A stretch of DNA of 64,000 bases from Takakia lepidozioides (lineage: Eukaryota > Plantae > Bryophyta), in contig CM060733.1 of NCBI GenBank assembly GCA_030704615.1, positions 74,896,001-74,960,000 of the forward strand, read 5' to 3'. The translations under genes were made by a program, and so were the position numbers. Each line of letters begins with the position of its first letter. The stretch's first letter is position 1. Shown here piece after piece: positions 10,149 to 64,000 of this stretch. Below the pieces are notes generated by a model, which was not told where the DNA came from, ran no database searches, and saw only the letters and a program-made list of their open reading frames with translations.

Positions 10149-11504
10149 TTAGGCAAAAAAGTTCAGCCATGCAGGTTTCTTGTAGCTATCCTTCCACAGG
10201 GAATCATAAGTAATGTGGAGCTTGAAATCTGGCCCTCTTGGATGACACTCTATCCCTGCTCCTTCAGCTATCCATGCCTCTGCACAGATCATGCATACAT
10301 CCTTGCATTGCTGTTAGCAGCTGACAATGGCAGCCTAGATTTGTTCCAGCTAACACCCAACTCGACTTATCACACTAGTTCCTATTCTCAATTGCATCTA
10401 CCACTCTGTAATCCAAAGGCATTTACCTTCCAAGACGGTTGTCCCACCATTGACTGGGGTCAGAAAAGTATTCATTCCACAACTTCTCTTCTCTGTTACC
10501 TATTTCTGGATACTTTCCTATTGTCACTTTGGTAGTATCATGTCAAAGTCACTCCAAACTATCAAAGGTTCACTCAACCAGCTAACTTGCAGAATTCTTA
10601 AAACATGAAAATTTAGGGCGATTCTGATAAGAGGGGAAAACAAAGTGAAATGTGTTGAAGAAGGTGCATTGATTAGCATTGCCTGATTTTATCAATTGTG
10701 CCGCTGCTGCTGCGGCTTCCAGTTGACCATCTACCCATGCAGGTTTCTTGGAGCTATTTTTCCACAGGGAATCACCCCTTCCCGCATCATTGCTCATAGG
10801 TCTCCAAAGCCTCCATCCACGCCCTTGCTGTGCATATCCTGCAATCATCGCACTCCACGACACCACATCTCGTTCAGCCATATTGTCGAACACTTCCTTT
10901 GCATCCTCGATGCACCCACATTTGGCATACATGCAGTCCACCAGGGCAGTGTTCAGAATGGCATTGGGTACAATTCCAGATTTGACGATGGCACCATGGA
11001 CCTCTTTGCCCTTTTCCAGAGCTCCTAGGCTTGCACATGCATTACAAACAAATGTGATGTGGTTGGGCTTCACCCCTTCACACAGCAGTTGCTCATAGGT
11101 CTCCAAAGCATTCCTACCACACCCCATGTTAAATCCTGCCAACATTATATTCAACGTGATCAAAGTTCGTTGAGGCAATCCGTTGAACACTCGGTGTGCA
11201 TTCATGATGCTCCTGCACTTAACATACATGTTCACAAGGGTGTTGAGGAGAAAAACACTTGGCGTGAATCCACTTTGGATAATGTGAGTGTGCACCTGCT
11301 TTCCAGCTTCCAGACCCTTCATTTTGATGCACTTAAGCAAGAGATAGACATACATATCTGAATCTGCTGAAATGCTCCTTGGTTTAAAGGTTGTAGAGCC
11401 TCTTTCAGTCTGCCTGCCTCACAAAGCATCTTCACATGCCCAGAAGAGCCAGAAGAGGCATTATGGACTCCCTCTCTTGATCCTCTTTTAGAAGTTGTGG
11501 TCAT
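10149..11504 (-). pseudogene. PLS-class PPR pseudogene joined to OSB-type PDF motifs
   Basis: PPR motifs: LCEAGRLKEAL, GKQVHTHIIQSGFTPSVFLLNTLVNMYVKC, MYAKCGCIEDAKEVFDNMAERDVVSWSAMIAGYAQQG. These are followed by GDSLWKNSSKKPAWVDGQL (~10720-10777), EEKLWNEYFSDPSQWWDNRLG (~10430-10492) and HPRGPDFKLHITYDSLWKDSYKKPAWL (~10161-10244). Frameshifts are present. Confidence 0.85.
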
Positions 11505-14079: not shown

Positions 14080-15200
14080 TGTGAAAACACCTATTCTATC
14101 CAGAGTCAATGACACACATAATCGTGTAAAACATAGAACTAGATTAAATAGATCTTACATCAAGAGAGAAAGTGTTCACAAGAGAGATCTGCACTCTCTG
14201 TGTCTCGGCTGAGTCTGGTGGTTCTACATCTAGCTCTGTACCGTTCCACACTCCTTGGTGACGTCAACCACCTAACCACTTCAGATGTAAGACTTGGATG
14301 GAACTGCACATCCTTAATCTATAACTAGTACATCCTACACTATACACTAACAGAGAATTATAGATGTATTCCTTCACTCCCACTAATACTCTGGCAATAT
14401 ATACGTAGTGTCTTCCATCTTGTCTGAATCTTGCTCTTGCTTCTTGTTCCACTTCAATCCAGCCCCTCTCGCACAAAGAAAGTGTTTCTCCTTCGGAACG
14501 CTCTTCGTCAAGAAATCAGCAATCATTTCAGATGTTGGAAGGTACTCCAGTGTCACTTCCTTCGACTGGACCTTTTCTCGTATGTAGTGATACTGGATGT
14601 CAATATGCTTACTACGAGCATGAAACTTAGGATTTGCAGATAGCGCTATCGCACTTTGATTATCTGCATAAATTATAGTAGTATTCTTCTGAACAAATCC
14701 CAAGTCCATCATCAGACTCCTGAGCCACACTGCCTCTACTGCAGCCTTTGATAAAGCCATGTATTCGGATTCAGTACTTGACAAAGCCACGAACCTCTGC
14801 TTTTTGCTTGACCAGCTTACAACACCACCTGCTAGCTTGAAACAAAAACCCGATGTTGAATGTCGAGTGTCTATGTCTCCAGCCCCATCTGCGTCTGAAA
14901 AACCTATTAGGGTTGCTCATTTGTCCGATTTAAAATACTAAATTCCAATGTGAAGAGTGCCTTTTATGTACCTCATCACCCTCTTTGCTGCCTACCAATT
15001 AGGCTCTCCGGGGTTCGATAGGAATTGAGCGAGACTACCCACTGCAAATGAGCAATCAAGTCGGGTGTTGACAACAGCATGCATCAAACAACAGACTGCT
15101 TGTGAATAAGACACTTCTTGTATCAAAGCTTTTCCATATTCAGTTTCTGGGCAATCTGACTTTGTTAGCTTCTCCCTGGTCTCCATTGGGGTGCTAATTG
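14080..15200 (-). mobile_element. Ty1/copia remnant: RT C-terminus, RNase H, PPT and 3' LTR; truncated by the CACTA insertion
   Basis: AVCCLMHAVVNTRLDCSFAVGSLAQF; ALSSTESEYMAL..DNQSAIAL..HARSKHIDIQYHYIRE..MIADFLTK. PPT AGTGGGAG (14377-14384) is followed by TG (LTR start at 14376). The left LTR edge is approximate. Confidence 0.9.
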
Positions 15201-15785
15201 CACTACAGCAAATGGGGGGGTGGGGTTGTGATGCCAGCCGCGCCCCCACGCCCCGCGCGGTGCCGAGGATGCGACGCCAACCCCGTGGAGCGTGTTTGCG
15301 ACGTCGGGCCGTCGCAGCCAAACCCCGCGGGAGTGAAACCTGGCGCCGGGGCCAGGCGGCGACGTCTGGCCGTCGCACGGAGTGATGAAGGAAAAATGGC
15401 AGCCCTTCCGTGCGACGCCTAAGCGTCGCCCCCAGCGAAGGGCAGAAGGCAGCCCTTTCTGGCGATGGTCGGTCGTCGCACGCCGGAAAAAAAAAAAACC
15501 ATTTCTTGCCATTTCTTTCAACGCAACCCTTTCTTGCGACGCCGGCCGTTGTATGGTGGCATGACGGGCGAAAGGCCCCTGCGACGGCCGGCGTCGCAAA
15601 TTGCCCGGCTGCCCTATTCTTTCAAAACAAAAAAAAATGTCACAGTTTGCGACGGCTATCCGTCGCCGTTTGCGACCCCCGGCCTCATAAATCCAAGAAA
15701 ACGCGTCGCAGTTTGCGACACGTGGGGGTCGCAGGAGGCGACGGCAGTGCTTTCTAGGTTTAGGTTTAGGGCCTTTGGGGTTCTT

Positions 15786-15817
<32 letters not shown>

Positions 15818-16075
15818 CATATGGTACTGGGTAGGTGTTTGTTTTTCTTTATGGTTTAGCTTGTTGTTGTGGACCTTCTTGTAGATTGTGACATTCATTT
15901 TGATAATTCTCTTGATACCACATCTGTATGTGTTGCTCAACATATTCATTGCCTGCCTTCTTTCTTGAAAGACTACCAGCCACAGCCATATTTGATTAAT
16001 CATAGGAATAAAGTACAATATGCATGTACATGTACAATCAATCGAAGGGATGGGTCCAGTTCGGTGCGAGAATTG

Positions 16076-19000
16076 TTATGTAGCTTTGATTTTGTGTCTA
16101 ATCAACTTGAACATCATCATCCGGAGCCTCTTCATCCTCATCAAGCTGCAAGTCTTCTTGGTCATCGGAGTCATCGTCATAAATGGCCCGGCCCTCAAAA
16201 GCACCTCCGAATCATCCTCCACCTCGTTGTCAATGGCCGTGTCTTCGTCTCCTTCTCCAACATCCGTATCTTCTAGAGCTTCATCATATAGGGTCCAGGA
16301 TGCATTGTCCGGGGCGTCATCATCCTCTTCTACCCCCTCTACCCAACCTCCATCATCAGCATCATTATGACCAGTCTCTCCGTCCACCGCAATTGCCTCA
16401 CCCCATGGAGATCCGAGACCATGATAGATACGTCTTTTTCTTGGCTGAGATGCACAACCACCTTCCAATTCCCCCCTCTTGTTTTGTCATCGGAGAAGAA
16501 AACTTGCTCCATGTCTGAAGGCCGTGAAAAAGGCTCATCGGAGGGACGATGAGTGGGTTGAGCCTATCTGCATTGACGCGCATGAAACCACAATCATCTT
16601 GCACTAGTGTTGCGGAGGGCCCCACAAGATGTGGCTGGAACCACCTTCCCTTGAAGAGAAGAGGCCGGTACCTTGTATACTGAAGTTGGAGTATGCTCTC
16701 AAGCTCTCCAATGTACTCAAGTTTGCTCATAGCAGGTCGTGTATCTCCCTTGCCCCACACGGAGTCTTGCCAATATGTGGCACACAAGCCAGAATCAAGG
16801 TTGTTTTGCGCTTCATGTCAAGAGCACGAATGCGGAAATGACGACCGTGAACCCAAACCGCCGTGTATGAGGTCGCGAATTGAGAGGGCCCCTTGCAATG
16901 TCTTGCACCAAATCTGAAACCACCTCTCCTTGAGCAACGGCGTCATAAACTGAAGTCCGAAGCCACTGTTGGAATGAACTTAGAGGCTGCAATTCCATGG
17001 GCAAATTTTGTGAAGGAACATTCCGGCGGCCCGCTCCTCGTCGTGGGCGTCTAGTAACCGGCCTTGGATGGTTCCGCCTCCATGCAAGCGTCTCCTCCTC
17101 TCATTGCTGAACAAGATTATTGTATCTTGCCTCCCACTCATGTATGGATGGGGTGTTCTTCAGTATGAAGTCATGCGCTTGCTCAATCACCAAGGTCGGC
17201 AATTTTACCCTCTTCGATTTTTTGGGCAAAACGATGTCATTGGTTCGTGCATCCTCCTCTTCCTTCCACATCCGAGGGGATTCCTCATCCACCCTTGCCA
17301 TGTACTCCGTGCAATAGAACATAGCTTCTTGCAACGTATACCCCTCCGCCATGCTACCCTCCGGTGCGCCATTTGTCTTACAAATCCTTTCAAAGTCTTC
17401 ATATAACGCTCAAGGAAGTACATCCACCGAGAATGAACGGGGCCGGCAATCGAAGCCTCTTCCACTAAGTGCACTACCAAGTGCACTTGGATGTCAAAGA
17501 AGGAGGGAGGAAGGTGCATCTCCAACATACACATTACCTCCGCCGCCTCCTTCTTCATGCGTGGAAAATCTGCTTCTTCCAACTCTTTGGAGCAAATCCA
17601 CCGGAACAAGCCTCCCAATCTATAGATTGTCTCACGAACCTCGGGAGTCAATGTCCCACGTACTGCAATGGGCAAGATGTCTTGCAATAGATTGTGGTAG
17701 TCATGAGACTTCAAACCATGGACCCCGTCTTCTTCGCTGAACTTCGTACGGAGGGATGACCCATAACCAGTTGGTGTTCGGACAACACTTATGGTGGCTA
17801 TCACTTTCTTGTATTCCTCCTTTGTCCATTGCCAAGGTGCGCGCCTATACTTCCACCGTACAACACCCTTTGGGTCCACACCATTTTGTTCGGCCATAGA
17901 TGGCGCATGCGACCCTGCTCCTCAAGCTCCTTTCTAACACCGAGAGAATCTCCTTTTGCAGCCACTCCCTTCTTTGCCGGCGTGCCATGAAGAACCCGAA
18001 AAAGGGACGAGCAGACATTCTTCTCAATATGCATGGGATCTAGAAGATGGCGAATCTTCAGGTCCTACATATATCCCCACCCACAAAGACTTACACAAAT
18101 TTTTACGTGAAAGTGACAATGCAACGCATACCAAATGTGCAATATCACATGTATGTACCGCCCAATATGGCAACTCGTAGAAGATTGAAAGTCGTTTCAT
18201 GCCGGGCACGTCCACTTCACCGTCCGTGCCCGCATGGGCCTCCTTCCATCGGTCCTCCCAAAACTGCCCGGACGGTGTCATAGGGGGGGGACGTACTTCT
18301 CTTTGCCATCAAACAAGTGTTTCTCTTTCTTCTCCATCGATGGCTCATAGGAAGAAATTTGCGGTAGTTGGGATACACCATCTTGTGAAGATGGCGGGAG
18401 CTATGTGCATCAAGATCATCGCCACAATGCAAGCATGCATGGTACCCTTTGGTGCTTAGCCCCGAGCAAACAGTTAGTCATGTACTACATCCCGCCACAT
18501 TAGCAAAAACAAAAAGTTGTCATGTGCATGGCCCATAATGTCATCTACCCCACTACGGTGCACAAGACTGTCGCCGCTACTTCAATCAATCCCAATCCTC
18601 ATCCTCATCCGGCATTGACAAGTGAATGTACGCGGGTTGTTCATGGGGAACATAATATACCTGGATAATCATGCATTGTCCAAAGCAAGATGCCTCTCAT
18701 CTGAAAAGATTGTCCGGCCATAGGGTCAAGTGAAGCATCCAATGCCGGGACCCCCCTCCATAGCTCTTTAAGTTCATCAACAAGAGGTCGCAAGTACGTG
18801 TCCATGTTTGCCACTTGTTTTTTCCCTTTGAGACATTCACATCATTGTTTCAATGCTCCACCAATATGCAGATTATACTACAAAATGAATTACACGTCTT
18901 ACTCCATGATTATGTCACTCATCAATCTTGCATCCGAATTGCGTCAAAGATCAGAAGTTTAATGTAAAGTCGAAGGCAATAATAAACATGAAATGAGTAC

Positions 19001-20205
19001 ACTCACCTGGCACAATGGCAGCCAACATGATATGGCCTTTTTTAATTGAAAGATACGGAGGGATGTTGTAATTCACCATGGTCACCGCCAAGTGGAATGA
19101 CTACATGACTGGACAGAGAATGGGTTGACCCCATCCGAGGAGAAGCCGAGGTGGACATGTCGTGGGTCCTCCAAGAGAAAAGCCACATCTCTTCAATATG
19201 CCTCCATGCTTGTGAATCTTGTGGCCCGCACACCTTTCCCGGGGGGCTCCGATGCGAGGCGTGCCATCTCATGAGTCTGGCCAATTCGGGGCTTCGGTAT
19301 TGTGCCCTCAATCGCGGGATGATCGAAAAGTAATGCATTTTCTAGGATGAAATACCCCACGCCCCCCACATGTAATCATCCCATTAGCACATATAATACA
19401 ACACCCTTATGCTTTCCCTTTATGCAGCCTCTCCCTCATTTGGGTGTGAATGGTCAAAACCAAACGTCGCTCCTTCCACTCCTCACTCACTCCTTCCAAA
19501 ACCACAATCAGATCTTGCATGAGTACTACTCTCTAATAATCTCCATGCGAGGGGAATGCACTTATACCTTGCGTGGTACTTTTTCCCCTTGACATCATCC
19601 CGATATCGGTCTTTCTTGCACTTTGGGCACTTGGTGAGATGCGAATCCTCTCCGTAGTATAGGGTTTTATCACATGGACATGCATGAAAAATCTTATAGC
19701 CCATCCCCACAGAGTCCAAGACTTCGCGCGCCTCTTTCCGCGACCGTGGCATCTTGGGTTTCAAGTGTGGAGCAAGGATATAGTCTGCAATAGTTCGCAT
19801 TATGGCAGACATCCCAACTTTACTTATGCCAAATCGAATTTGAAGATTGAGCAAAAGTAAGATTGTTGAAAGTCGACTCACTTTCGCCCCTTCGTACAAG
19901 GGAGTTCTCGCCTCCCTCTCCATGTCATTTGAGGGGGCCATTTCAGGATCATCGATTGGCCGGGTTCCCTCTTCATGGGATGCATCAGCGCCCACATGAT
20001 GCATTAAGAGATCCTCCATGGCTTGCACATCCTCCTGGTTAATTCCATGCTCATTGTTGTTGTCACTGTCACTATCACTGTCATCGTCATCATCGTCCGG
20101 TACCGTGGGGGCGGCGTCTCGCCCACGGCTCCCGCCTGATGTACTTGGGTTGTTTTCGGATGGGGTGCCAAGAGAAAAGACCGGGAAGGGATGGACAAAG
20201 TCCTG
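16076..20205 (-). pseudogene. CACTA transposase (TnpD; Transposase_21 / DUF4218 / DUF4216-type), spliced and frameshifted
   Basis: HACPCDKTLY..CPKCKKDRY, MHYFSIIPRL, SSDGVNPF, WTMHDYP, LSIFYELPYW, MHIEKNV, GLKSHDYH, PPSFFDIQVHLVVHL..GPVHSRWMYFLERYMKTLK, YIGELESILQLQY..LFKGRWF. GT-AG introns at about 19569-19343, 19007-18830 and 18157-18065. Confidence 0.93.
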
Positions 20206-21180
20206 ATACGAACAAATGAACATAGGGACATGTATTATAATGTGTCCTTGCAACCATACACTTCATTATAAGCGAAATGCAAACAACAACCTTCAATGTG
20301 TGTGTGCATCAAATATGTCATTCAATAATTACATGTATGTGCGCAACGTACACGCATGCAAAGTTTCAAACCCAAACAAAATCATTTGCCCCCCCAATGA
20401 CGCATTCACCCTATCAACCAATTTTTGTTTATTAATGTGAAAGAAAATCCTCTCATGCCATTGCACCCAACAAACGGATGTGGCTCAAGCTTCATTTTTT
20501 CCTACATGTGCTTAAATATGTGTGCAACACCTGTACAAAGATCCAGCAGAGAAAAAAAAAAAAAAAAAAATGCCTCCCCAACGACGCACTCACCCTTGCA
20601 CCAATTTTGAATTAAATCGAATTTAAATGAATTTAAAATAAAAAAAATTGCATTTAGAAAATATATGATTGGGTTTTGAGGGCTGTAATGATTTTATTTT
20701 TAGCTCTATTTTGTTCTGTGACATCGGCTTTGCACCACTACATCCATGCAAAAATGGGACAAAAAAAAAATGGAAAAAAAATAAGTGTGTTTCTAGGGTC
20801 ACTTTTGCAGAACTCTCTATAAAGAGTGCATGAAGTTGAAGATAATTCAACTTTGGAGTGCAAATGAGAGAACAAAATCTGGTTATGGGTCCAAATGACT
20901 TTTGTTTACTCCCAAATTTTGCACGCACATTGCATATGCTATCTCAAAGCATATGGCTTGAAAATGGAAAAAAAAAAAATCATCTGCAGGCGAAACACAA
21001 TTTTTCATCTCTATGACACGTAGCTGCGTTCAATACTAGAATGACCCATTGAATCAACTTGGTTCAAGCTCATATTTGGTCCACATGTGCATAAGTATGT
21101 TTAGATCACATATGCAAAGTTGCAACCCACACGAGCAACAAGAAAAAAAATTACATCAATCGATTAATCGATGACAATAT

Positions 21181-21765
21181 CTACAATGCTCCTCTACGCG
21201 ATCCGTGTCTCAAAGGAACCCTATTTCTATCATACACATCCCACTCACGCTGTAATCGGAGGTCCCAATCATCCCGGGAGAACTCGTATGATGCAAATAG
21301 TTCGCTGCCAGCCCTAATAGTCCTACTAGCACATGTCATCACAAACATGTGCATCCCCTCACAGTATACTGACGTATGACCACAAAAGCTCTCATGTCCA
21401 TCGCTTCGCTCGTCCCATACTACATTGGTTCTCCTAGGATGACCAAAAGAACTATTGACCAGCCCAGCAACATTGCCGAAGATGTCAGGGTCACCATCAC
21501 AAAATCTGATCTCAATGGGAGACAACCCCCGTCTACGTACATCCTGTCCGTTGACACACAAAATGTAGGGTAAGATGTATGGGGCTTCGAGGCGTAATGT
21601 ACGGAACTCCGCGGAGGTGTAGTATGGACCGTAGTAGGGAAACAAGTCCACCATGCTGTTTCTCCGAGGAGGAACCACAATATCATTGACCGTGAATAAA
21701 CCCCGACCCATAGCAGGGTCTGTAGCGGCTCTCACAACATACCCCCTAATATTCGAACTCCACAT
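21181..21765 (-). CDS. Compact SET-domain protein (lysine methyltransferase-like) inside the CACTA element
   Basis: SET motifs in the correct order: GRGLFT (I), PYYGPYY (II), GNVAGLVNSS..N (III, canonical NH replaced by NS) and ASRTIRAGSELFASY (IV, catalytic Tyr kept). 194 aa, uninterrupted, with no pre- or post-SET Cys clusters. The Pro-rich ORF 21746..22210 overlaps it upstream in another frame. Confidence 0.8.
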   Translation of the reverse strand: MWSSNIRGYVVRAATDPAMGRGLFTVNDIVVPPRRNSMVDLFPYYGPYYTSAEFRTLRLEAPYILPYILCVNGQDVRRRGLSPIEIRFCDGDPDIFGNVAGLVNSSFGHPRRTNVVWDERSDGHESFCGHTSVYCEGMHMFVMTCASRTIRAGSELFASYEFSRDDWDLRLQREWDVYDRNRVPLRHGSRRGAL

Positions 21766-23004
21766 TTTCTCGGATGGGGGTGGGAGGGTCGAGATGATTC
21801 CCCCAACAACGAGGTTGGACAGTCCTCAGTAACATAGTCATATGCGCTTCCCATCGGGGGAGGATCCGGCTCAGGCCGCCCAAGCCGAAGGGAGGAAACC
21901 TAGGGCGAAGCCGACCCCTCCTAGGGGTTCGGGGGGCACATGCACGTGGAGGTGGAGGTGGAGGTGGAGGTGGAGGCGGAGGTGGTGGTGGTGGTGTGGT
22001 GGAGGTGGTACTGCTGGCGGAGGAGATGAAAGTGGAGGTGGTAATTAACACACCACCAACTCTTTTTCTCAAAAACCGTTGGCAAAAAAACCCCCCTATG
22101 GTGCTAGAGCCCAAGACAATAAATCCTTCATCTCGTTCTATCTTTAGGATGCTCACACTATGGAAAAATTTGTTGAGACCCAGCGCTTTGCGATTATAAG
22201 ATTGAACCACATTTTGGGTATGTGAATCCTAATTACACCGTTTATCCTTTTAACCCCAAGACCCACAACCAAAACCGCCAATCCAAACCCAACACCATAA
22301 AAAAAGCAAACACCCTAACACCAGTACCATATGAAAAAATAAATAAAAGCTAAGAACCCAAAAGGCCCTAAACCCTAAATCAGAAAGGTCGTCGCCTCCT
22401 GCGACATCGACTGGCGTCGCATTGGATGACGAGTTTTTTTACCTAGTGACGGACAGCATCGCTAGGGGCGACATGTTTTTTATTTATGGGGCCGGGGGTC
22501 GCAAGAAACGACGGCCAGCCGTCGCAATCTTCATTTTACATTTAAAAAAAGGCGTGCGACGGCCGGCGTTTGGGCGCCGCGCCCTTTTTTTTTTTTCCTA
22601 GTGCTTTAAGCATCTCTTTCCCCTCCCGTTTTGTTGTTCATTGGGAGAGAGGTAGTTCAGAGAGTGGTTTAGGGTGGAGGAGAAACGCACATGCTGCTGC
22701 CGAGGTGGTCGCAAACCCAAGGAGTTTGCCCCAATGCTCCAACGCCCAAGGTAAGCACCGCCTCCTCCCTCACTTTCTGTCTTTCTTTCTTGCCCTAAGC
22801 ACGGGCTGATGTCTCTCTCCCCTGGTGGTAGGAACGCCGTGCAGAGGCACGACCTAACGAGCTGAAGAGAGAGAGAGAGTCGTGGTGAGCGGGGGAGAGA
22901 GACGCCCTGCAGCGGCGGGGACCCGCGCCGCTGGCAGCCGCAACAGCACCGCAACAGATCACCGCGCCAGCTCGCTTCAAGCACCAGCAGCAACAGAGGT
23001 ACGT

Positions 23005-23655
23005 CAGGGAAATTGCACTCTCCTTTTCCTCTCTGCTTATGTTTACTGTTCAAAGGTAGTCTTCATGCCCTGACTTTAAATTTAGGTCTGGTGCCAAGAG
23101 TGGGATAGACCCTTGAGTGCATCCATGATGTCCTCCCCCATGTCATAGACTGGAAACAGGTTAAGGGAAGTTTTCTTCCTAACTTCATTTTCATCGGACA
23201 ATTTTTTGGTAACAGACATGGCTTTGGACACTACACTCTCTAAGTCAGGTTTATCCAACAAGGTCAAGACTTGCGGGTCCAGATTCAGATCCTTGAGAAT
23301 CTCTTTTACTCTCTTCTCCTAGGGCTCACCTTGTTTGACAGGGCGAAGGGGCTGGGCTTTTGGCTCAGCCTCGACTTTTTCAAAGTTAGTAAACAGAGGT
23401 ACATGCACAATTCCTTTGATAGATTTGAAGAGAGCGTCTCTTTGGTGAGAGAACCCCAGATAGTGTATCAGAAAATGAGTATTGTCTTCAGATTGCCCAC
23501 GCAACGGGCAATTGCACTCTCTCTTTCCTCTCTGCTTCTGTTTGTTGTTCAACGGTAGGCTTCCTGCCCTGAGTTTAAATTTCAGTCTAGTACCGAGAGT
23601 GGGTAGACCCTTGAGGTCATCCAAGATGTCCTCCCCCATGTCACTGACTGGTAGA
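23005..23655 (-). mobile_element. Non-LTR retrotransposon (LINE) ORF2 C-terminal remnant, partly duplicated
   Basis: LKFKLRAGSLPLN..CNCPLRGQSEDNTHFLIHY resembles the degenerate CCHC end of LINE ORF2. ~23030-23150 duplicates ~23510-23650. Confidence 0.55.
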
Positions 23656-49682: not shown

Positions 49683-50729
49683 ATGGCAAAAGCCCACGCC
49701 AAACGACGTACAAAACCACTCCCATGGAAGGCAGGGTCCTCGTCCGCAGATGCGGCATTGAACGTGAGATACATATCCACAAACGCACAAGTACAACAAC
49801 TCGACGCGCCCAAACAGGGAGGGTATGGTACAATTCGGAGGGTTAGAATTGTTGGGGATCAATTCATTCCTCCATCTTGGGAGCTAGCAGGGAAAACGTC
49901 CAGGGAAACAAATGTTGAGCTTGCCAAAGTCCAACATAACAATGAGGCGTTGGTTGTAAAGTTCCATCATTTCGGCATCATAAAGTATTTTGCGTTGCAT
50001 CCACGTCGAAATGAAGGTTACACACATTGGTGGAATGGGGGGACCATACGATCATGGTTGAGTATTGATAAGAAATTGAGGAATGATCGGGATAACAGGG
50101 AGTTAATGGAACAACATGGGACAGAGCAGGAAATGCAGGAGGTCAACCGACTGGTTCGATTCCGACATAATCGCACCCAATTGGCATGGGCGCTTTTGCA
50201 CATCATGCTCAACGTCCATAATCACCACCTCTTGCACAACAACATGTTCCCCGACAACATCTTGTTACATTTTTCACAAGGGTCTGAAGATGTGTACATC
50301 GGGGAATGCGATTGGGGGATGGTCTCCACGACGGATGACCCAAAAACTACGTTGTACATTTTCGAGAGCAGAGACAAGATGATAAAGACTCTCGCACATA
50401 GATGGTGGATTGCACCTGAAATTGCAATTGTTCATAATGTAGCCAACAATCAGTCAGATGGCACACCTCGTAGGTCCCCTCTAACCGTGTCATCAGATAC
50501 CTTTGCAATTGGAAATATAGCCCAGGCAATAAATGGGGGTAACACGTTCGATGCAAGTCTGTTCAACGATATATCTACTGGAACTTGTTTTGTTTCCGCT
50601 CTGGAAAACTTCTGTGTAGACACAGTAGAATTGCGGTACAAACTAGAAAATGTTGTGAAGCGTTTCATGACGGGGCTATTCAATTGGCCTGAGTCCAAAA
50701 ATTGTTGGAGGATGGATAGAAACTTGTAG
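49683..50729 (+). CDS. Intronless divergent protein kinase-like ORF (probable pseudokinase or pseudogene, transposon-associated)
   Basis: QGGYGTI (Gly loop), LAGK (VAIK Lys), NEAL (alphaC Glu), LLHNNMFPDNILL (catalytic loop, Asp replaced by Asn), CDWG (DFG equivalent), WWIAPE, SDTFAIG. Confidence 0.8.
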   Translation: MAKAHAKRRTKPLPWKAGSSSADAALNVRYISTNAQVQQLDAPKQGGYGTIRRVRIVGDQFIPPSWELAGKTSRETNVELAKVQHNNEALVVKFHHFGIIKYFALHPRRNEGYTHWWNGGTIRSWLSIDKKLRNDRDNRELMEQHGTEQEMQEVNRLVRFRHNRTQLAWALLHIMLNVHNHHLLHNNMFPDNILLHFSQGSEDVYIGECDWGMVSTTDDPKTTLYIFESRDKMIKTLAHRWWIAPEIAIVHNVANNQSDGTPRRSPLTVSSDTFAIGNIAQAINGGNTFDASLFNDISTGTCFVSALENFCVDTVELRYKLENVVKRFMTGLFNWPESKNCWRMDRNL

Positions 50730-50894: not shown

Positions 50895-53800
50895 TCAATG
50901 GGTGAACCAATCATTCCCCTGTCAAATGATTGTAGATTGATTTGAAACTTTGGGAGTGTGTTGTACATGCCCTCTTTAAGTTACCGGACAAGTATGAGGT
51001 CAATCTAAAATGTGAACCAATAGTTCTCTTATTAAATGATTCATGATTGAAAATTGGTTGAAAGGTTTAACGAGTCGTTCGGGGGGGCAAATGATTATTT
51101 CTTCGCTTGCAACTTTGTGTACGTGATTTGTACGTACTTAAGCACATATGGACCAAAGTTGAACTTCAACAAAGTTGTTTGAATCGGTTATTCAAATTCA
51201 TAAGGAGAAACAATCTTTCGCCTGCACATGAATTGTTTTTAATTCCATTCTGAAGCCATATGCTTGATAACAACATGAAGAGTTGCATGCAAAATATCAC
51301 CATGAACAGACATCGTCTGCATCCAAAACACATTTTATTCCCTCATTTGCACTCCAAGGTGAAGTTATCTTCAACTTCATGCACTCTTCATAGAGAGTTC
51401 TGCAATAGTGAGCATAGAGCAAAGGATGAACGTTTTTTTCCAAATATTTTTCTTTGGTACATTTTTTGGCAAGGATGTGGTGGTGTGAGGGTTCAACTCA
51501 CAGAACAAAATCAAGCCAAAAACAAAATCATTGCGCCCCACACTCATTGCGCCCCACAATCCTATGCTCTCTAAATCATTTTATTTAGTAAAAATGCAGT
51601 TCAATTCAAAATTGGATGAAAGAGTGAACGGAAACTTCCCCGATGAAATGATATTTTATTGCTCCAAAACTTTGCAAGTGTCTTCTACATGCCCTCTTAC
51701 ACGTCTTTGAGAAGTATGACATCAATCTAAAATGGTTTAAAGGGTGAACCAATCGTCCTCCTACCAAATGATTTTAAATTGATTTGAAACTTTGCAAGTG
51801 TCTTGTACATGCCCTCTTACGGGTCTTTCACAAGTTTCAAATCAATCTAAAATGGTTAAAAGGGTGAATCAATCATGAACATATCAAATGATTTTGGAGT
51901 GCTTTAAAGCTTTGCAAGTGTCTTTCACATGCCATTTTAAAGGTACCGGACAAGTATGAGGTTAGTAAAATATGGTTGAAATGGTGAACCAATTGTTCCC
52001 CTATCAAATAATTTTACATTGCTTTGAAGCTTTGCAAGTGTCAGCCACATGCCCTCCTACAAGTATGACGTGAATAAAAAATGGTTGAAAGGGTGAACCA
52101 ATCATTCCGCTATCAAATGATTTTATATTGCTTTGGATGTCATTGCTTTGGTAATTCTAGCCCCCCAATGGCCCATTGTAACCCTTGAATTACAATTCAA
52201 AATGCAATTCAAGCCCTTAAAATTGGTACTGCCAGTCCCTAAAATGATCAACCCCGGCCGCCCCTCAAATTGCAATTGAAGCCCCTGAAATTTAATTCCA
52301 ACCCCTCAAATTGCACTTCTAGCCCCTGAAATGACAATTCCCGCCCCTCAAATTGCAACTGTAGCCTGTGAAATGGCAATTGCTAGTGCAACCCCTGAAA
52401 TTGGCAATTGAAGCCCCTAGAATGGCAGTTTCAGCCCCTCAAATTGGCAATTCGAGCCCCATAAATGGCAATTTCAGCCCTTGAAATTGGCTATGGGTGA
52501 ACCAATCATTCCCCTGCCAAATGATTTTGGATTCATTTGAAACTTTGCGAGTGTCTTGTACATGCCCCCTTAAAGTTACTGGACAAGTATGATGTCAATG
52601 TTAAATGGTTCAAAGGGTGAACCAACAGTTCCCCTGTTGGATGATTCATGATTAATCGTTAACAATTGATCTCATATTACACTGGGACCTATCAGAGGGT
52701 ACATTGAACACACTGGCCAAGTCTCAAAACGAATGAAAATCATTTGGATGGGCAACCATCCGTCGGCCCATTGAACGAATTTCGGTTGATCTCATATTAC
52801 TCTGGGGCCTCTTCCATGGCACATTGAATATACTGGCCAAGTCTCAAAGCGAACCAAAATCATCTCGATGGCCAACCATCCGTTGAGCCATCGAATGAAT
52901 TTCGATTGATTTGATATTAGTCCGGAACCTGTGAGAGGGTGTTTCGAACATACTGGCAAAGTTTGGAAGTAAACAAAAATAATTTGGATGGGCAACCATC
53001 CGTTGAATGTATTCCGCTGGATCTGTTATTGCTTTGGGACCTGTTGGACTGTGTTTCGCGTGCTCGCGATTTTGTTTTTATTTGGTTTTTGAATGGGGCG
53101 TGTAATGTAGCCATATGCAACGTGCGTGCCAAATTTGGGAGCAAACATAATTCATTTGGACCCAAAACCACAGTTTCTTCCCTGTTTTGCACTCCAAACT
53201 TGATTTGTGTTTAACTTCATGCACTCTTCATAGAGAGTTTTGCAATAGTGAGCGAAGAGAACACTTTTTTTTTGGGCATTTTTTATTGGTCCAAATTTTG
53301 GCGGGGAAGTAGTGGTGGGATGCTGGAAGCCGCAGAACAAAATTGAGCCAAAAACAAAATCGATACATGCCAGAAACCCCCAATGAAAGGCAGTGCAAAC
53401 CTATTTATTGGCTTAAAATTAATTTAAATTCAATTACATTATGGAATGGCTTGGTGTCGATGGGGAGGCAAATGATTTATTCGTCTGTTGTGTCTTCGCA
53501 CATGTGTTGCACACATGTTCAAGCACATGCGGACAAAAGAGGGGCTTCAACCACATCCGTTCAATGGGTGCAATAGCCGTGCACGCATTGCAGGATTTCT
53601 TTTTCGCAATGAACAAAAACCAGATGACAACTAAACGCCTCATTGGCCCATCGAACAAATTTCGATTGATCTCATATTACACTGGGACCTATCAGAAGGT
53701 ACATTGAACACACTGGCCAAGTCTCAAAGCGAACGAAAATCATTTGGATGGGCAACCATCCGTCGGCCCATTGAACGAATTTCAATTGATCTCATATTAC

Positions 53801-57920: not shown

Positions 57921-60900
57921 ATTTGAACATGATTGAACACACAGTTCGATGCCATGGTAATCGCGAAGCCTGCCTCGCGCCGTCTCTCCTCCATCTCTGT
58001 CACGCCCGCCATCACCCCTCCCTCTTTGCCTATCCACCTCCCTGCCCATATCGGTTTGTTTTTCTTTACGATTACATATACATATTGCGATTACGGTATG
58101 TACATCTGCCACAAATATGTACGTACATACACACACGAGCTGGACACATTCATCTATATAGATGATTATGCATCGAGATCCACAAACATTCATCCATAAG
58201 AAATGCATTCGCTTGTGTCAAGACAAACTTATACATTGACTTTCTTCCAGACTATCCCGGAGAATGTTTCATTCAAACACAACGATTTCCAAACATGCAA
58301 GGGCTTAGTATGTAGACCATATCTAAATCAGTCTATTCCATCTGGGCGCTTTTTACGTAGGAAAGCCTCAATTCCACTCCGGCTAACTTTTAGGGTTGGG
58401 GATCTACACTGGGAACTGCTACTATACCTTGTTATCGACTGATACAAAAGCTTGTTGTAACTAGCACGGTCATTCTCTGTTTCATGGGAGGGATAAAGGT
58501 CTCACTTCGGCAATCGCACACTTATCAAATCGCAGTTTATGACACGAGGGTCGGCAGTGGGATGGATGTTAAAGATGTAGTTTGCAATAACTAAAAAAAA
58601 TGTAAATCATTCCACAGAAATATGCACCTACCTTAGGCCTCTGGGCTCACGATCTAGCATTCCCCCTTCCGCCTGTTCTGTCCGCGGTTATAGGTCCGTG
58701 CCTATGGAAGTGACATGGCATGACGAGACGTGGCGTCAACCACGCTGGCGAGGACTGCTGACGTGTCGTGACACCCGTGAACCAACGTGGCGAGAACTGC
58801 TGACGTGGCGTGAGCTTGACTACGCTCACGTGCTCACACGCTGACGGGGCCAGGCTCACGCGGAGGCATCCCCCTATCAATAACAACACTCGCCAGGGTG
58901 ATTCCTAGGAATTAGTTACTTATTCATGTGTAGTTTTTGGGGTGAATCCCTAGATAGACGATGGGTCCTTTAAAACTACATACTCTAGCTTAGGCTTGGA
59001 TTATATGGCTAATGATTCCATCTCGAGAATTGATACTCGGATTTGATGGTAGCTGGAGCGCAAATCGATCCGGCTGAAATACTTCGCTCCTGCCAACCGA
59101 TCGAAGAGGTCGTCGATCCTTGGCAAAGGGTACCGATTTTTTATAGTCACCTTATTCAGAGCCCTGTAATCGACACACATTTGCAGCGTCCCATCCTTCT
59201 TGTCTACAAATAGCACCGGGGCTCCGTAAGGTGACTTACTCGGCCGGATGTACCCCTTTGACATTAGATCCTTGAGCTGAGCCTTCGGCTCAACCAACTC
59301 TCTGTGGCTCAACCGGTAGGGCGCCTTGGCAGGCGGCTCCGATCCTGGTATCACCTCAATCTTGTGGTCAACTCCTCTTCGCGGTGGCAAGCCGCTTGGT
59401 AAATCCTCCGGCATCACATCCTGGTATTTATCCAAGATCCCCTTGATCCAATCTGGGCTCGGCTCCCTATCGCCTTCTCCCTCCACTTGTCGTAAAGCAA
59501 AAATTGGGGCTTGTGTGGCTCCTCCACGGCCAACTCTTTTGCTGACAGCAGATTTATTCGCCCTCCCACTGGGTTGGGCGTTTTTTACACTCGTAAAACT
59601 TCGCCACCATTCCCACACGGTAGTGTGACTACTCTCTTGCGGCCATCTATGACCGCTCCGGATTGCTCAAAAGGTCATCCCCAAAATGAGATCCACTCCA
59701 TCGATCTCGCAAATGGTGAAGTTCTCACGTCCCTCCCAACTCCTTAGCTGAAGAGGAACATCGAACGCCAACCTGGTCGCCAGTTGTGGTTCTCTTTTGG
59801 CAGAACGCACTTCGATAGAGGCCCCCACATCACTTGTCGGGAGTCCCAGCTTTCGTGCCGTTGCCGGTGTCATGAAGGAGTGCGACGCTCCTGTGTCCAC
59901 CAACAACGACACGTTAGTTCCGGAAATTATCCCACTCATGAACATTAACTGACTTCCTTCACGCAAGGTGCCGGTCTCCTGATATAACTCACAAGAGTAG
60001 TTGCCTACCTTGCAAGTCTTGGCGACCACCGCTTCCACCAAGCGGCTGATGGAATCTTCGGACAGCTCCGTGGTCGCCCGAGTCATGTTCAATTGTCGGG
60101 ATTTCGCGCACTTCTTGGCCATGTGCCCGGGCTCCCCACAATTAAAGCACACTCCATCGAAGATTGTCTTCTGTCCGCCATAAGTAGCCGCACTTGATTT
60201 TCTTTTCGGAGCATTGAGTGCCGCCTTGACGTGTGAAGGCCCTCCCTTTGATTTCCATATGCCATTGTCGCCGCGTGGCCTATCCCACTTCTTTTCCGGT
60301 CGGAATGAGTCACCCCCCCGCCGGGTCTTCTTGTGGTTCAGCTCTGTACGGCCTTGTCTTTCGCCCCTAGGGACATCCGAGAAACATTTAGCCCTTTCAA
60401 TTGCCTCGTTCAAAGTCTTAGGTGGCTTCTCCTCCAACTTCCGCCTGGCCCATGGGGCCAGTCCCGCCACAAAGTTGAAGACCATTTCTGGTTCCGCCAT
60501 ATCCGTGACTTTGAGCAACAACACATTGAAAGCCTGAACATATCCCCGAATGTCATCCATTTGCTTCAAATTCCTCATCTTGTCCCGGGCGAGCCAGGAC
60601 GCGTTGAGGGGCACAAACTATCTTTTCATAAGTTCCTTGAACCCACTCCAGCTCAAGGTTTCTGGATTTGGACCTTGGTCATGAAGGCGTTTCTGCCACC
60701 ATTGTTGACCATAGCCCCTCAAATAGGTGGGAGCCACTTCCACCCGATCCTCGTCACTCAACTTGGCCGCCCGGAAGTACTGCTCCAACTCCAAGAACCA
60801 GGTGTTGAGTGCCTTCCGATTTTGGACGCCCTCAAAGGTGTCGGGTTCCTTAGGCTTCACCTTAAGCTTTGCCTTCGTGGAAGTGGCATTAGCCGCCCTC

Positions 60901-62089: not shown

Positions 62090-63101
62090 AAACTTAAGCC
62101 TAACCCTAAACTCCCAATCCTAATTCGGGCCTGGTGCGACCTCCTAGGCGTCGCAAATGTAAGAAACAAAAGAAACCAGACCCTCTGCGTCGCAGATGGG
62201 GCCACCCTAAAATTTTATTTGAAAGAAAACCGTCGCAGGTTTAATGCGACGCCCTCTAAAAACGCCTCGCAGATTAACTGCGACGCCACGCCCGTCGCAC
62301 GAGGCGACCCTTTATTGGGGCACCCACAAGCGCCGTAGTTTTACTGCGACGCCTGATCCGTCGCACGACGGACACATATTGCCCGCCCGCCCCCCCCCCC
62401 CCACAATCGTTGCAGGTTTACTGCGACGCGTCTTGCGTCGCACAAGGGGACACCCATTGGGCGCCCGTAAGCGTCGCAGTTCTAATGCGACGTCCCCGAC
62501 GTCGCAGGAGGGGCACCCGAAAGAAAAATAAAATAAAATCACAATAACCCGATAAGATAAATAAATAAATAAAATTACCCGAAAGGCGTTGCAATTTTAC
62601 TACAACGCATAGGACGTCGCCCCTGTGAGCAGATTGAAAAAGATATTTTTTATTTAAAAAAAGATGAAAAAACATCGCATTTTTACTACGACGCAATAGG
62701 TCGCAATAATGGATATAACCAAAAAAAAAATTAATATACAGTTTTTATTTAAAAACACAAAATAAAAACAGCCGCACGGAAACGGCGACAGCAGGGACGA
62801 CGCACAGTGCGTCACTTTTCGATGCGGAGCATCGCGTTCCGTGCACCTCACGCTTCCCCCCTTTGCGACGCCGAGGGTGTCGCAGGTGGTAGTGACGCTA
62901 CGGGCGTCGCAAACCCTGGAGTCCCGGGGGACGCATTGTGTGACCCCCCTGGCGTTGCCTTGAGCGCGGATTCTGCGACGTCACCGCTGCGACACAAATG
63001 CGACGCCTCAGATTTGGGATTTTTGCCGCGCTCGAAATCCGCGATGTGCGACGCTCCTGGCGTCGCTCGGGCATCACTAACCCCCCTCCAACGGTGTAGT
63101 G
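62090..63101. mobile_element. CACTA terminal/subterminal region related to the 15201 element
   Basis: Dense TGCGACG/CGTCGCA repeats. Ends GGTGTAGTG, whose reverse complement CACTACACC..GGGGGGTTAGTGATGCC resembles 15201 CACTACAGC..GGGGTTGTGATGCC. Confidence 0.8.
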
Positions 63102-63475
63102 GAAGTACATTGGAATGTGCCACAACCCAGTTTTTGTATAATCGAAATTGCATGAGTTTTGGTTTTGTCCTCATGACATTCAACAGTGTGTTCGTGGGGG
63201 AGTCCACAGAGATGCGAAGGACAGACCAGAGCCACCACAGGTATGGCCTGTGATGCCAGGAACTGATTTGACTCAGGAGGAAGTTAACTCATTGGATGCA
63301 GCCGGGTTTCGTTTGGTCCCGAGGGATGATATCCCACGTTTTCACATGGAGGAGGACGTTGGTGCCCAACAACCCGGAGCTCATCAGAATTGGGACTATT
63401 ATCCCAAATGCAGATGGGGCAAGCAATATAATCGAAAAAAGCAGAGAGCTATTAATAGCAGGGTTGCACACGTCA
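63102..63475 (+). pseudogene. Truncated coding fragment of unknown, probably transposon-associated, family
   Basis: Protein-like HEFWFCPHDIQQCVRG..WPVMPGTDLTQEEVNSLDAAGFRL, cut on the left by a CACTA end. Family not identified. Confidence 0.4.
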
Positions 63476-63699
63476 ATGACGTCACGTCACGTCACATCAC
63501 GTCGGACTTGACGTTGACGCGACCAACGTCACGTCAATTTTGTCGAAAAATTAGTAAAAACATGAGTTAGGTGAAAAATATACCACGTAGGTGGACACGT
63601 TGTATTCCAAACGACACCTTGGCAAGTGAATGAATTGTTTTATAAATTACTCCATCCGCCAATAGTTGAGGTCATTTTTAAATCATTATTGTTAAATTG

Positions 63700-64000
63700 G
63701 TGCAACCTCCAAATGGTGGTGGTCGCAAAATTTATCTTATTTTTTAATAGTGCGACCACCAGCAAAGGGGTTGTCACAGCATTTTTTGTTTTTAAAAAAT
63801 AGATGCGACCACCAGCAGGGGTGGTCGCATTTTTTTCTTTTCTTAAACAGTTACGACCACCGCTACTGGTGGTCGCACAATTTTTATTTTATTTGTAATA
63901 GGTGCAACCACCATCAGGGGGGTGGTCGCAACATTTTTCTATTTTTTAATATCTACGACCACCAGCATGGGGGTGGTCGCAGCATTTTTTTTTTAATAGG
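63700..64000. repeat. Array of palindromic TGCGACCACC-n-GGTGGTCGCA units with A/T spacers (~50-bp period), probably transposon subterminal repeats
   Basis: Six units are visible and the array continues off the window end. Confidence 0.8.

Follow-up and report, generated by a model that had tools for sequence, protein, structure and literature searches.

In plants, transposons are kept silent by methylation of histones and of DNA. The counter-measures known from plant transposons, VANC and TnpA, are to our knowledge DNA-binding proteins and not enzymes. SET genes carried by transposons are already known from HarbingerS (Kojima & Jurka, Repbase Reports 2014), from oomycete MuDR families and from Helitron captures, as cited in PMC12730594 and bioRxiv 10.1101/2025.02.11.637652. 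In Plavaka elements of the red alga Bostrychia moritziana, members of the EnSpm/CACTA superfamily, the accessory gene PAG2 contains a SET domain (bioRxiv 10.1101/2025.02.11.637652). In the literature searched, no publication described a TnpD-type CACTA element of land plants with a SET gene. The original prediction for the locus described here, made from the nucleotide sequence, was that no plant CACTA-SET family had been described. This holds for land plants in the literature searched, but a transposon-encoded SET gene is not a new kind of finding (PMC12730594; bioRxiv 10.1101/2025.02.11.637652).

The DNA analysed, referred to as the window, is a stretch of 64,000 nucleotides from Takakia lepidozioides (contig CM060733.1, positions 74,896,001 to 74,960,000). 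The segment between 15201 and approximately 22603 is, in our view, probably a decayed copy, no longer autonomous, of a CACTA/EnSpm lineage with a SET gene upstream of TnpD. This assessment applies to the explanation as a whole, including the putative methyltransferase role of the SET protein.

Results

Ends, arms and flanks of the element

The left end (15201–15860; the 3' end relative to the genes) begins with CACTA at 15201–15205, the only occurrence of this motif between 14800 and 15900. It continues as a GC-rich subterminal region (GC 0.57–0.60) with about 15 TGCGAC/GTCGCA motifs at 15270–15740 and a 35-nt poly-T at 15783–15817. The right end (22294–22603; the 5' end relative to the genes) comprises an inverted arm, a few GCGACG motifs and a TAGTG at 22599–22603 whose identity as the terminus is doubtful. 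TGCGAC/GTCGCA motifs are also clustered here, at 22390–22560, and short subterminal repeat arrays in both orientations are thus present at both ends, as in CACTA/EnSpm elements. The long inverted subterminal repeat that had been predicted was recovered by blastn, its left arm at 15644–15855 matching 22294–22530 in inverted orientation with 80–87% identity and E values down to 1.6e-16.

Terminal inverted repeats of CACTA/EnSpm elements read 5'-CACTA...TAGTG-3' and are usually 10–28 bp long. Of the CACTA/TAGTG ends originally proposed, the left one stands; the right one matches it in the 5-nt core only (CACTACAGCAAATGG versus CACTAGGAAAAAAAA), and no 3-bp target site duplication (TSD) was found at the ends of the copy, where the flanks read TTG and CTT. 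The subterminal DNA of the right arm is about 370 bp shorter than that of the left arm, and the right terminus is therefore probably truncated or degenerate. Because the two flanks are different repeats, the right end is probably also rearranged. Beyond it, 22604–23006 is GC-rich DNA without a match, and LINE-like homology begins at 23007. The flanking copia-like and LINE-like ORFs gave no match in Pfam and a weak lead in the ESM atlas. An alternative right terminus at 25090 (CACTACAACAATTGAC), matching at 12 of 16 positions, was rejected; it has neither a TSD nor subterminal repeats, and the chance expectation of such a match is, as a rough estimate, about 10%. A GCGACG-rich cluster at 62135–63976 was likewise rejected as a second copy, sharing no sequence similarity with the element. 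Since neither the right terminus nor a TSD can be shown for the window copy, the evidence that it sits between CACTA ends comes from its left end and its inverted arms and from a Riccia relative (see below).

The transposase of the window copy

A TnpD-type transposase pseudogene occupies approximately 16100–20253 on the minus strand. It was recognised by Pfam matches and by collinearity in tblastn with the intact TnpD of two homologous loci (L010 and L004), with changes of frame. From its N-terminus it comprises an acidic and zinc-ribbon region (19483–20253), Transposase_21 (18220–18841; E 1.7e-13 and 1.4e-10), DUF4218 (17104–17897; E 3.9e-25) and a C-terminal region (16398–16817), all on the minus strand. 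At least five frame switches lie within the contiguous homology, near 19175, 19087, 17897, 17364 and 16797. The co-oriented, frameshifted TnpD of the original prediction is thereby confirmed as a TnpD-type DDE transposase of CACTA/EnSpm, present in the window copy as a pseudogene. TnpA-like ORFs had been reported as missing, and the 17 element ORFs and pieces scanned indeed gave no match to TnpA/Transposase_24.

The spacer between SET and TnpD (20380–21125) consists largely of a dispersed repeat with further copies at 51050–51538 and 53108–53574 (76–85% identity, blastn), neither of which has a SET or TnpD beside it. This repeat is probably a small nested insertion; the corresponding spacer of L010 measures 292 bp.

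The SET ORF and its frame break

The SET-core ORF (194 aa; 21181–21765, minus strand, stop codon 21181–21183) carries the four motifs GRGLF, YYG, GNVAGLVNSS and IRAGSELFASY. These supply the GxG (G20, G22), the YYG, an NHS-like N104-S-S with N114, and the catalytic tyrosine motif E155...Y160. It scores 149.6 bits (E 1e-46) against the family HMM and keeps 28 of 35 family consensus columns. Family homology begins only at RGYVV (codon 21745–21747), and the first six codons (MWSSNI), ATG included, are out-of-frame sequence.

Upstream, in another reading frame of the same strand, lies an N-terminal extension (21749–22228) with a poly-Pro/low-complexity stretch, the basic motif PRTPRRGRLRPR and a conserved N-flank module at about 21749–21847. 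No ATG precedes the conserved flank in this frame. When the frame break at nt 21748 was bridged by an X, the score against the family HMM rose from 149.6 to 159.2 bits (+9.6), a value reached by none of 200 shuffles; a junction tried earlier gave +4.9 bits. The extension shows weak collinear blastp matches to the N-flanks of four homologues (P0017, P0020, P0026 and P0040), and the equivalent module is ordered in the model of P0004 (pLDDT 92–95). Judging from these comparisons, the window ORF represents only the 3' portion of a longer gene. Its ATG is fortuitous, since the N-terminal flank is read in a different frame up to the break at nt 21748. The ORF and its four motifs are thus present as predicted, but it does not represent an uninterrupted stand-alone gene; the SET gene of intact relatives encodes 260–460 aa. 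With at least five frameshifts in TnpD and with SET cut from its N-flank, neither product of the window copy is likely to be functional.

Homologues, motifs and predicted fold

An exhaustive HMMER search with the SET ORF returned 57 homologues at E≤1e-3, with 35–41% identity. This search alone recovered the family, and neither a word-indexed protein search nor an exact look-up gave a match. Taken singly, the ORF scores 14.5 bits against Pfam SET (PF00856) and is sub-threshold (cut-off 22.4). Of the aligned family members, however, 30 out of 36 match PF00856 (best E 1.6e-9), and several exceed its gathering score, for example P0001 (35.6 bits) and P0057 (34.2 bits). When the single ORF was run against the PDB with phmmer, only chance helix-turn-helix (HTH) matches were obtained. 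The family profile was needed, and with it the hits were almost exclusively SET methyltransferases, two non-SET chains appearing only at E>0.5. ESM features of the ORF gave 0.96 to SET clusters.

The AF2 model of 21181–21765 has a pLDDT of 82.4 and a pTM of 0.74. Foldseek returned 139 PDB matches at E<1e-3, and the best 50 of these 139 are all SET proteins. The model matches SET8, MLL, SET7/9 and EZH2 (Foldseek/VIA-align; Z up to 13.3). The best VIA-align match is SET8 (Z 13.3, RMSD 2.4 Å over 122 residues), and 407 chains reach Z≥8. The agreement concerns the SET beta-fold. Profile and model thus bear out the prediction, and the 194-aa ORF is a genuine SET domain.

G22, Y49, Y67, N114 and E155 are invariant in the family, and Y160 is shared by at least 90% of its members. 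The SAM-binding and catalytic tyrosine motifs are therefore present with one variation, a Ser in place of the His of the NHS motif. The position of this His is occupied by Phe in the Legionella SET protein LegAS4 as aligned by the family profile; LegAS4 is an active enzyme. Cys-rich pre-SET, post-SET or CXC zinc clusters, as in the SUV39, SET2 and EZH classes, were found neither in the ORF nor in the family consensus A2/A3, and Pfam detects SET only.

Linkage to TnpD, distribution and selection

SET lies directly upstream of TnpD and in the same orientation in 8 of 9 readable homologue contexts, which agrees with the predicted association. This order was seen in L001–L003, L004–L008, L009, L010, L011 and L012, comprising three loci of the liverwort Riccia sorocarpa and several environmental or Logan assemblies, and it holds at 32–41% protein identity. 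In one Riccia locus (L001), SET and TnpD are enclosed by CACTACTACAAA ends (13/16 TIR) and an ATA/ATA TSD. SET thus lies within the element boundaries in this copy, and its pairing with the transposase is repeated in other copies and species. CACTA ends upstream of SET were not found in L002, L004, L009 and L010.

Between two Riccia copies, the one pair compared, dN/dS is 0.25–0.33 over 152 codons, a ratio that indicates purifying selection on SET. A closer SET for this calculation was sought beside the nearest TnpD relatives (L016–L019), none of which has one. Because these closest TnpD lineages do without SET, the gene appears to be dispensable cargo.

Besides the Takakia window, the family occurs in Riccia, Psilotum and Ginkgo. 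A Psilotum transcript ORF (P0006) provides a lead on expression. Of the 57 homologues, 14 were checked for origin or context; all of these belong to the CACTA-SET family, with no canonical host SET protein among them.

Discussion

Intact members of the lineage contain two co-oriented genes, the SET accessory gene and, directly downstream, TnpD with Transposase_21, DUF4218 and DUF4216. In the accessory protein, of about 260–460 aa, a disordered N-terminus and a structured N-flank precede a compact SET core that lacks pre- and post-SET zinc clusters. We infer that in intact elements this protein may be an active S-adenosylmethionine-dependent lysine methyltransferase encoded by the transposon. 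It could then act in trans on chromatin, most likely on histone tails at element copies or in their neighbourhood, or else on a transposition or host factor. Blocked or redirected host silencing marks could be the benefit to the element, to which the SET protein would be a helpful yet dispensable cargo. We put forward only tentatively the more specific proposal that an old land-plant CACTA lineage (liverwort, fern, Ginkgo, Takakia) encodes an active histone-lysine methyltransferase that rewrites chromatin at its own copies or targets, thereby blocking silencing or guiding integration.

Three other explanations have to be weighed. SET might not be a separate protein but an N-terminal transposase module or a spliced isoform, i.e. 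a SET-transposase fusion of SETMAR-like layout, or a first exon shared with TnpD. A fusion product is suggested by the Riccia gene models P0002 and P0024, which join the SET exon to the acidic N-terminal sequence of TnpD. Two further homologues, P0007 and P0009, begin with a CxCxxC...H motif that recalls the zinc ribbons associated with transposases, and the ATG-less N-extension frame of the window would also fit. However, both models drop the catalytic Tyr, whereas in the genomic sequence the ORF runs on through EYSF and ends at a stop codon; the joins therefore look like an annotation artefact. Furthermore, SET is a single uninterrupted ORF of 273–324 aa in L004, L009, L010 and L012, with its own stop past the catalytic Tyr, the TnpD of L010 has its own ATG 292 bp downstream of SET, and Pfam found no Transpos_assoc domain in the N-termini of the homologues. 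We consider this reading unlikely. Somewhat less probable still is a catalytically inert SET-like protein serving as a binding or adaptor module, for instance in recognising histone tails or recruiting host factors. Such a role would be in line with the exchange of the canonical His for Ser, with the Gln or Lys that replaces Asn in some members, with the missing post-SET zinc sites and with a Pfam SET match that is weak for many members. Against it stand the family-wide conservation of the GxG, of the Asn of motif III, of the invariant Glu and of the catalytic Tyr, the same N-x-S variant in LegAS4, which the profile matches over the full domain, and a fold that matches active enzymes at Z 12–13.

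The spacer beside the SET ORF holds an unrelated dispersed repeat, so insertions have occurred inside the element, and its closest TnpD relatives are without SET. Both observations could be accommodated by recent capture of a host SET fragment (Pack-CACTA-type transduplication) or by an independent nested insertion, with no role for SET in the transposon. This reading is very improbable and largely refuted by the order and orientation that recur in liverwort, environmental and Logan contigs, by the enclosure of the L001 SET in TIR and TSD, by a dN/dS below 1 for the Riccia pair and by the lack of any canonical host SET family among the origin-checked matches at E≤1e-3. The original argument against a recent host capture is thereby strengthened, and on the present comparisons SET is best regarded as a long-kept accessory gene of the transposon.

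The window copy itself adds one more, broken, member to the family. The wider interest lies in intact relatives, where a SET enzyme under purifying selection beside a transposase in very distant lineages of land plants would mean that the transposon itself encodes a chromatin writer. If true, this would amount to an enzymatic counter-defence of transposons in plants, distinct from the non-enzymatic VANC and TnpA, and would offer a direct way to study how DNA transposons of bryophytes and ferns cope with being silenced.

Among the known systems, TnpA of En/Spm and VANC of VANDAL resemble the present SET gene in that each accompanies the transposase gene of a DNA transposon of plants as a second gene, and they may modulate element silencing (PMC12730594). 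They are, however, DNA-binding and non-enzymatic, whereas the present candidate has the fold of an enzyme. HarbingerS, MuDR and Helitron elements share with the present family a SET lysine-methyltransferase-like ORF besides the transposase of a DNA transposon, presumed to act on chromatin marks. The superfamily differs, being here a land-plant TnpD-type CACTA, and the present SET family is very divergent: it has an NSS motif and an N-flank of its own and lacks zinc clusters.

Among known enzymes, the fold is shared with the zinc-cluster-free SET8/KMT5A and SET7/9, the MLL-type core, LegAS4 and the giant-virus/phaeovirus SET proteins (Z 12–13.3; Foldseek E 1e-6 to 1e-5). These compact SET domains also have the same succession of motifs as the present family (GxG, YxG, N-x-S...N and E-L-x-x-x-Y), and the family profile aligns to LegAS4 over the whole domain. 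Sequence identity to them is nevertheless only 14–24%, and the present family is set apart by its own N-flank and a GN[IV]AGY[IV]NSS signature. PAG2 of Plavaka, finally, combines SET with a DNA methylase domain (PF01555) in elements of 17–19 kb that have two other accessory genes and a Plavaka-type transposase (bioRxiv 10.1101/2025.02.11.637652), whereas the present lineage places a SET-only protein ahead of a Transposase_21/DUF4218 TnpD in elements of about 7–15 kb.

The 194-aa ORF Has a SET Fold

The original prediction assigned a SET domain to a 194-aa ORF (21181–21765, minus strand), and the motifs quoted for it are present in canonical order: GxG, YxG, N-S-S...N in place of NHSCxPN, and E-L-F-x-x-Y, which carries the catalytic Tyr. 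The ORF lacks Cys clusters of the pre- or post-SET kind. Searched by phmmer against the PDB, the ORF returned chance matches only, and a word-indexed protein search and an exact look-up were both empty. Language-model features favoured SET, whose clusters made up 19 of 30 matches (score 0.96), and an exhaustive HMMER search retrieved 57 homologues at E≤1e-3 with 35–41% identity. In the SET-domain alignment of this family (A2), G22, Y49, Y67, N114 and E155 are invariant, and G20, F24, G46, D90, G91, P93, N98, S105, G153 and Y160 are kept by at least 90% of members. The ORF alone remained below the 22.4-bit cut-off of the Pfam SET profile (14.5 bits, E 0.048), yet PF00856 was matched by 30 of the 36 aligned family members (best E 1.6e-9), and several full-length members exceeded its gathering score (35.6, 34.2, 30.0 and 26.1 bits). 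The family profile retrieved almost exclusively SET methyltransferases from the PDB, namely LegAS4 over the whole domain (E 1.7e-4), followed by EZH2, MLL, SET8 and ATXR5; two non-SET chains appeared only at E>0.5.

An AlphaFold2 model of the ORF calculated with A2 (pLDDT 82.4, pTM 0.74) was submitted to Foldseek, giving 139 PDB matches at E<1e-3, the best 50 of which were all SET. VIA-align superimposed the model onto SET8 with a Z-score of 13.3 (rmsd 2.4 Å across 122 residues) and returned 407 chains at Z≥8; the ESM Atlas and viral libraries concurred. The SET fold is thus established, and we infer that the domain is catalytic.

SET Lies Upstream of TnpD in Related Elements

Among the homologues with a named source, at least seven are paralogous proteins of Riccia sorocarpa, and others are from Psilotum nudum (a transcript) and Ginkgo biloba; the remainder come from Logan, ENA or JGI assemblies. 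Nine distinct contexts were examined. In eight of them SET is co-oriented with, and immediately upstream of, sequence for TnpD, the CACTA transposase (Riccia L001, L002 and L003; L004–L008; L009; L010; L011; L012); the contig of the ninth (L015) is too short for the neighbourhood of SET to be read. At the family level, both this position and the SET core, including SAM-binding and catalytic residues, are conserved. In the Riccia locus L001 the two genes are enclosed by a terminal inverted repeat matching at 13 of 16 positions (CACTACTACAAA) with a perfect ATA/ATA duplication. Two Riccia SET copies show purifying selection, with a dN/dS of 0.25–0.33 over 152 codons. No canonical host SET protein was seen among the 14 homologues, of 57, whose origin or context was checked. 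Taken together, these observations effectively exclude an independent nested insertion as well as recent host capture, against which the original prediction had also argued.

Two other genes were noted at the Riccia loci. A Harbinger-type transposase gene (Plant_tran/DDE_Tnp_4; L001, 14919–16982) is nested inside the CACTA-SET element and splits TnpD. A 977-aa Peptidase_C48 (ULP1-like) gene lies on the opposite strand 5 kb from the SET-TnpD pair of L003 (16473–19574); such proteases are known passengers of plant CACTA and Mutator elements.

The closest relatives of the window TnpD (55–62% identity in the DUF4218 piece) gave a different picture. A six-frame scan with the family HMM found no SET upstream of TnpD within ~7 kb (L016) or ~1.6 kb (L019). 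These two loci (JGI 3300061194 and ENA ERZ24794429; 55–56% DUF4218 identity) carry other small upstream ORFs. Presence of the cargo therefore varies among related CACTA lineages; SET is dispensable in sister TnpD lineages and is accessory, not universal, in this group.

The Window Locus Is a Broken Copy

Downstream of the ORF, TnpD sequence is scattered over many frames (~16100–20253, minus strand), with matches to DUF4218 (E 3.9e-25) and Transposase_21 (E 1.7e-13 and 1.4e-10). It is collinear with the intact TnpD ORFs of L010 and L004, and comparison with these places frame switches inside contiguous homology near 19175, 19087, 17897, 17364 and 16797. The transposase is therefore a pseudogene, which bears out the frameshifted, co-oriented TnpD of the prediction. 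Its end lies only ~200 bp from the left subterminal region. As predicted, no TnpA was visible: a scan of 17 ORFs and fragments of the element gave no Transposase_24 match. A dispersed A/T-rich repeat of ~500–750 bp (20380–21125) occupies most of the SET-TnpD spacer; two further window copies lie at 51050–51538 and 53108–53574 (76–85% identity) with no transposase near, and the repeat may represent a small non-autonomous element inserted into the CACTA.

The SET gene had been described as uninterrupted and stand-alone, and this did not hold. Intact relatives are single ORFs of ~260–460 aa. They begin with a variable N-terminus of low complexity, followed by a basic PRTR-type motif, a conserved ~45-aa module ending VWGRRWIV, and the SET core. 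In the AlphaFold model of one full-length homologue (P0004), residues 1–110 are disordered and the module (~110–160) is ordered (pLDDT 92–95) and packed before the core. The corresponding stretch in the window (21749–22228), containing PRTPRRGRLRPR and ...LLRTVQPRCWGNHLDPPTPIRENVEFEY, lies in a different frame from the ORF, and no ATG precedes the conserved flank there. Reading through the break at nt 21748, with X joining ...VEFEY to RGYVV..., raised the family-HMM score from 149.6 to 159.2 bits, a value reached by none of 200 shuffled flanks; a first, slightly different junction gained 4.9 bits (1 of 200 shuffles). By blastp, this frame also aligned weakly and collinearly with N-flanks from four homologues. 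The ATG and first six codons of the ORF are therefore out-of-frame sequence. The core is well preserved, keeping 28 of 35 consensus columns (other members 20–35), and in the family tree its long branch falls between the two main clades. Because the ~3.3 kb of TnpD carry at least five frameshifts, an open SET stretch of 585 nt is unremarkable and does not show that this copy is under selection.

Of the predicted ends, the left one is sound: no CACTA other than that at 15201 occurs between 14800 and 15900, and ~650 bp of GC-rich DNA (GC 0.57–0.60) dense in TGCGAC/GTCGCA motifs follow it. The inner parts of the arms were also confirmed as inverted repeats (15644–15855 versus 22294–22530; 80–87% identity, E 1.6e-16). 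The right terminus is weak, since TAGTG (22599–22603) matches the left end only in the 5-nt core, the 3-bp flanks differ (TTG versus CTT), and the right arm has ~370 bp less subterminal DNA. To the left, minus-strand ORFs (14383–15200), which we take to be the C-terminal RT/RNase H part of pol from a broken copia element, abut the CACTA and stop there; they had no Pfam match and a weak RVT_2/RNase H lead in the ESM Atlas, and no continuation was seen to the right. There, ~400 bp of unmatched GC-rich DNA (22604–23006) precede a LINE-like 3′ fragment with Cys/His motif ORFs in two copies (23007–23153 and 23506–23651; 86% identical), the homology of the first breaking off sharply at 23007. As the flanks are different repeats, the right end is probably truncated or rearranged. 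The predicted element is confirmed in part: the family-level idea of a CACTA with a SET gene holds, and this locus itself is broken and doubtful at one end.

Elsewhere in the window, a second dense TGCGAC/GTCGCA cluster (62135–63976), without similarity to these arms, is probably the end of another CACTA family running off the window. Further ORFs comprise a 348-aa ORF with a weak protein-kinase match (49683–50729, plus strand; E 1.2e-5), a Ty3-type gag-protease ORF with zinc knuckle and aspartyl protease (59667–60614, minus strand) and a PPR-repeat ORF (10582–11355, minus strand).

Proposed Role and Comparison with Known Elements

A lysine methyltransferase encoded by intact elements would serve the element, most likely through a histone mark deposited on or close to its copies that would interfere with or redirect host silencing. 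Among the structural neighbours of the model (SET8, SET7/9, the MLL core and LegAS4), enzymes of the H3K4 or H4K20 type or mono-methylating enzymes predominate; the fold itself does not reveal the substrate, and the target may be a non-histone protein, or the domain an inert binding module. SET may also be produced fused to the transposase or as an isoform sharing an exon with it, as two Riccia gene models splice it onto TnpD sequence. However, these models drop the catalytic Tyr that the genomic ORF keeps, and TnpD of L010 has its own ATG 292 bp past the SET stop.

SET genes on transposons are a known kind: HarbingerS, oomycete MuDR and Helitron captures are cited in two papers (PMC12730594; bioRxiv 10.1101/2025.02.11.637652). 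A search of the full-text literature found no description of one in a TnpD-type CACTA of land plants. In red algae, Plavaka elements, which belong to the EnSpm superfamily, carry an accessory gene, PAG2, comprising a DNA methylase and SET (bioRxiv 10.1101/2025.02.11.637652). PAG2 and the family described here are alike as SET-bearing accessory genes in EnSpm-superfamily elements, whereas the joining of a DNA methylase to SET is a feature of PAG2.
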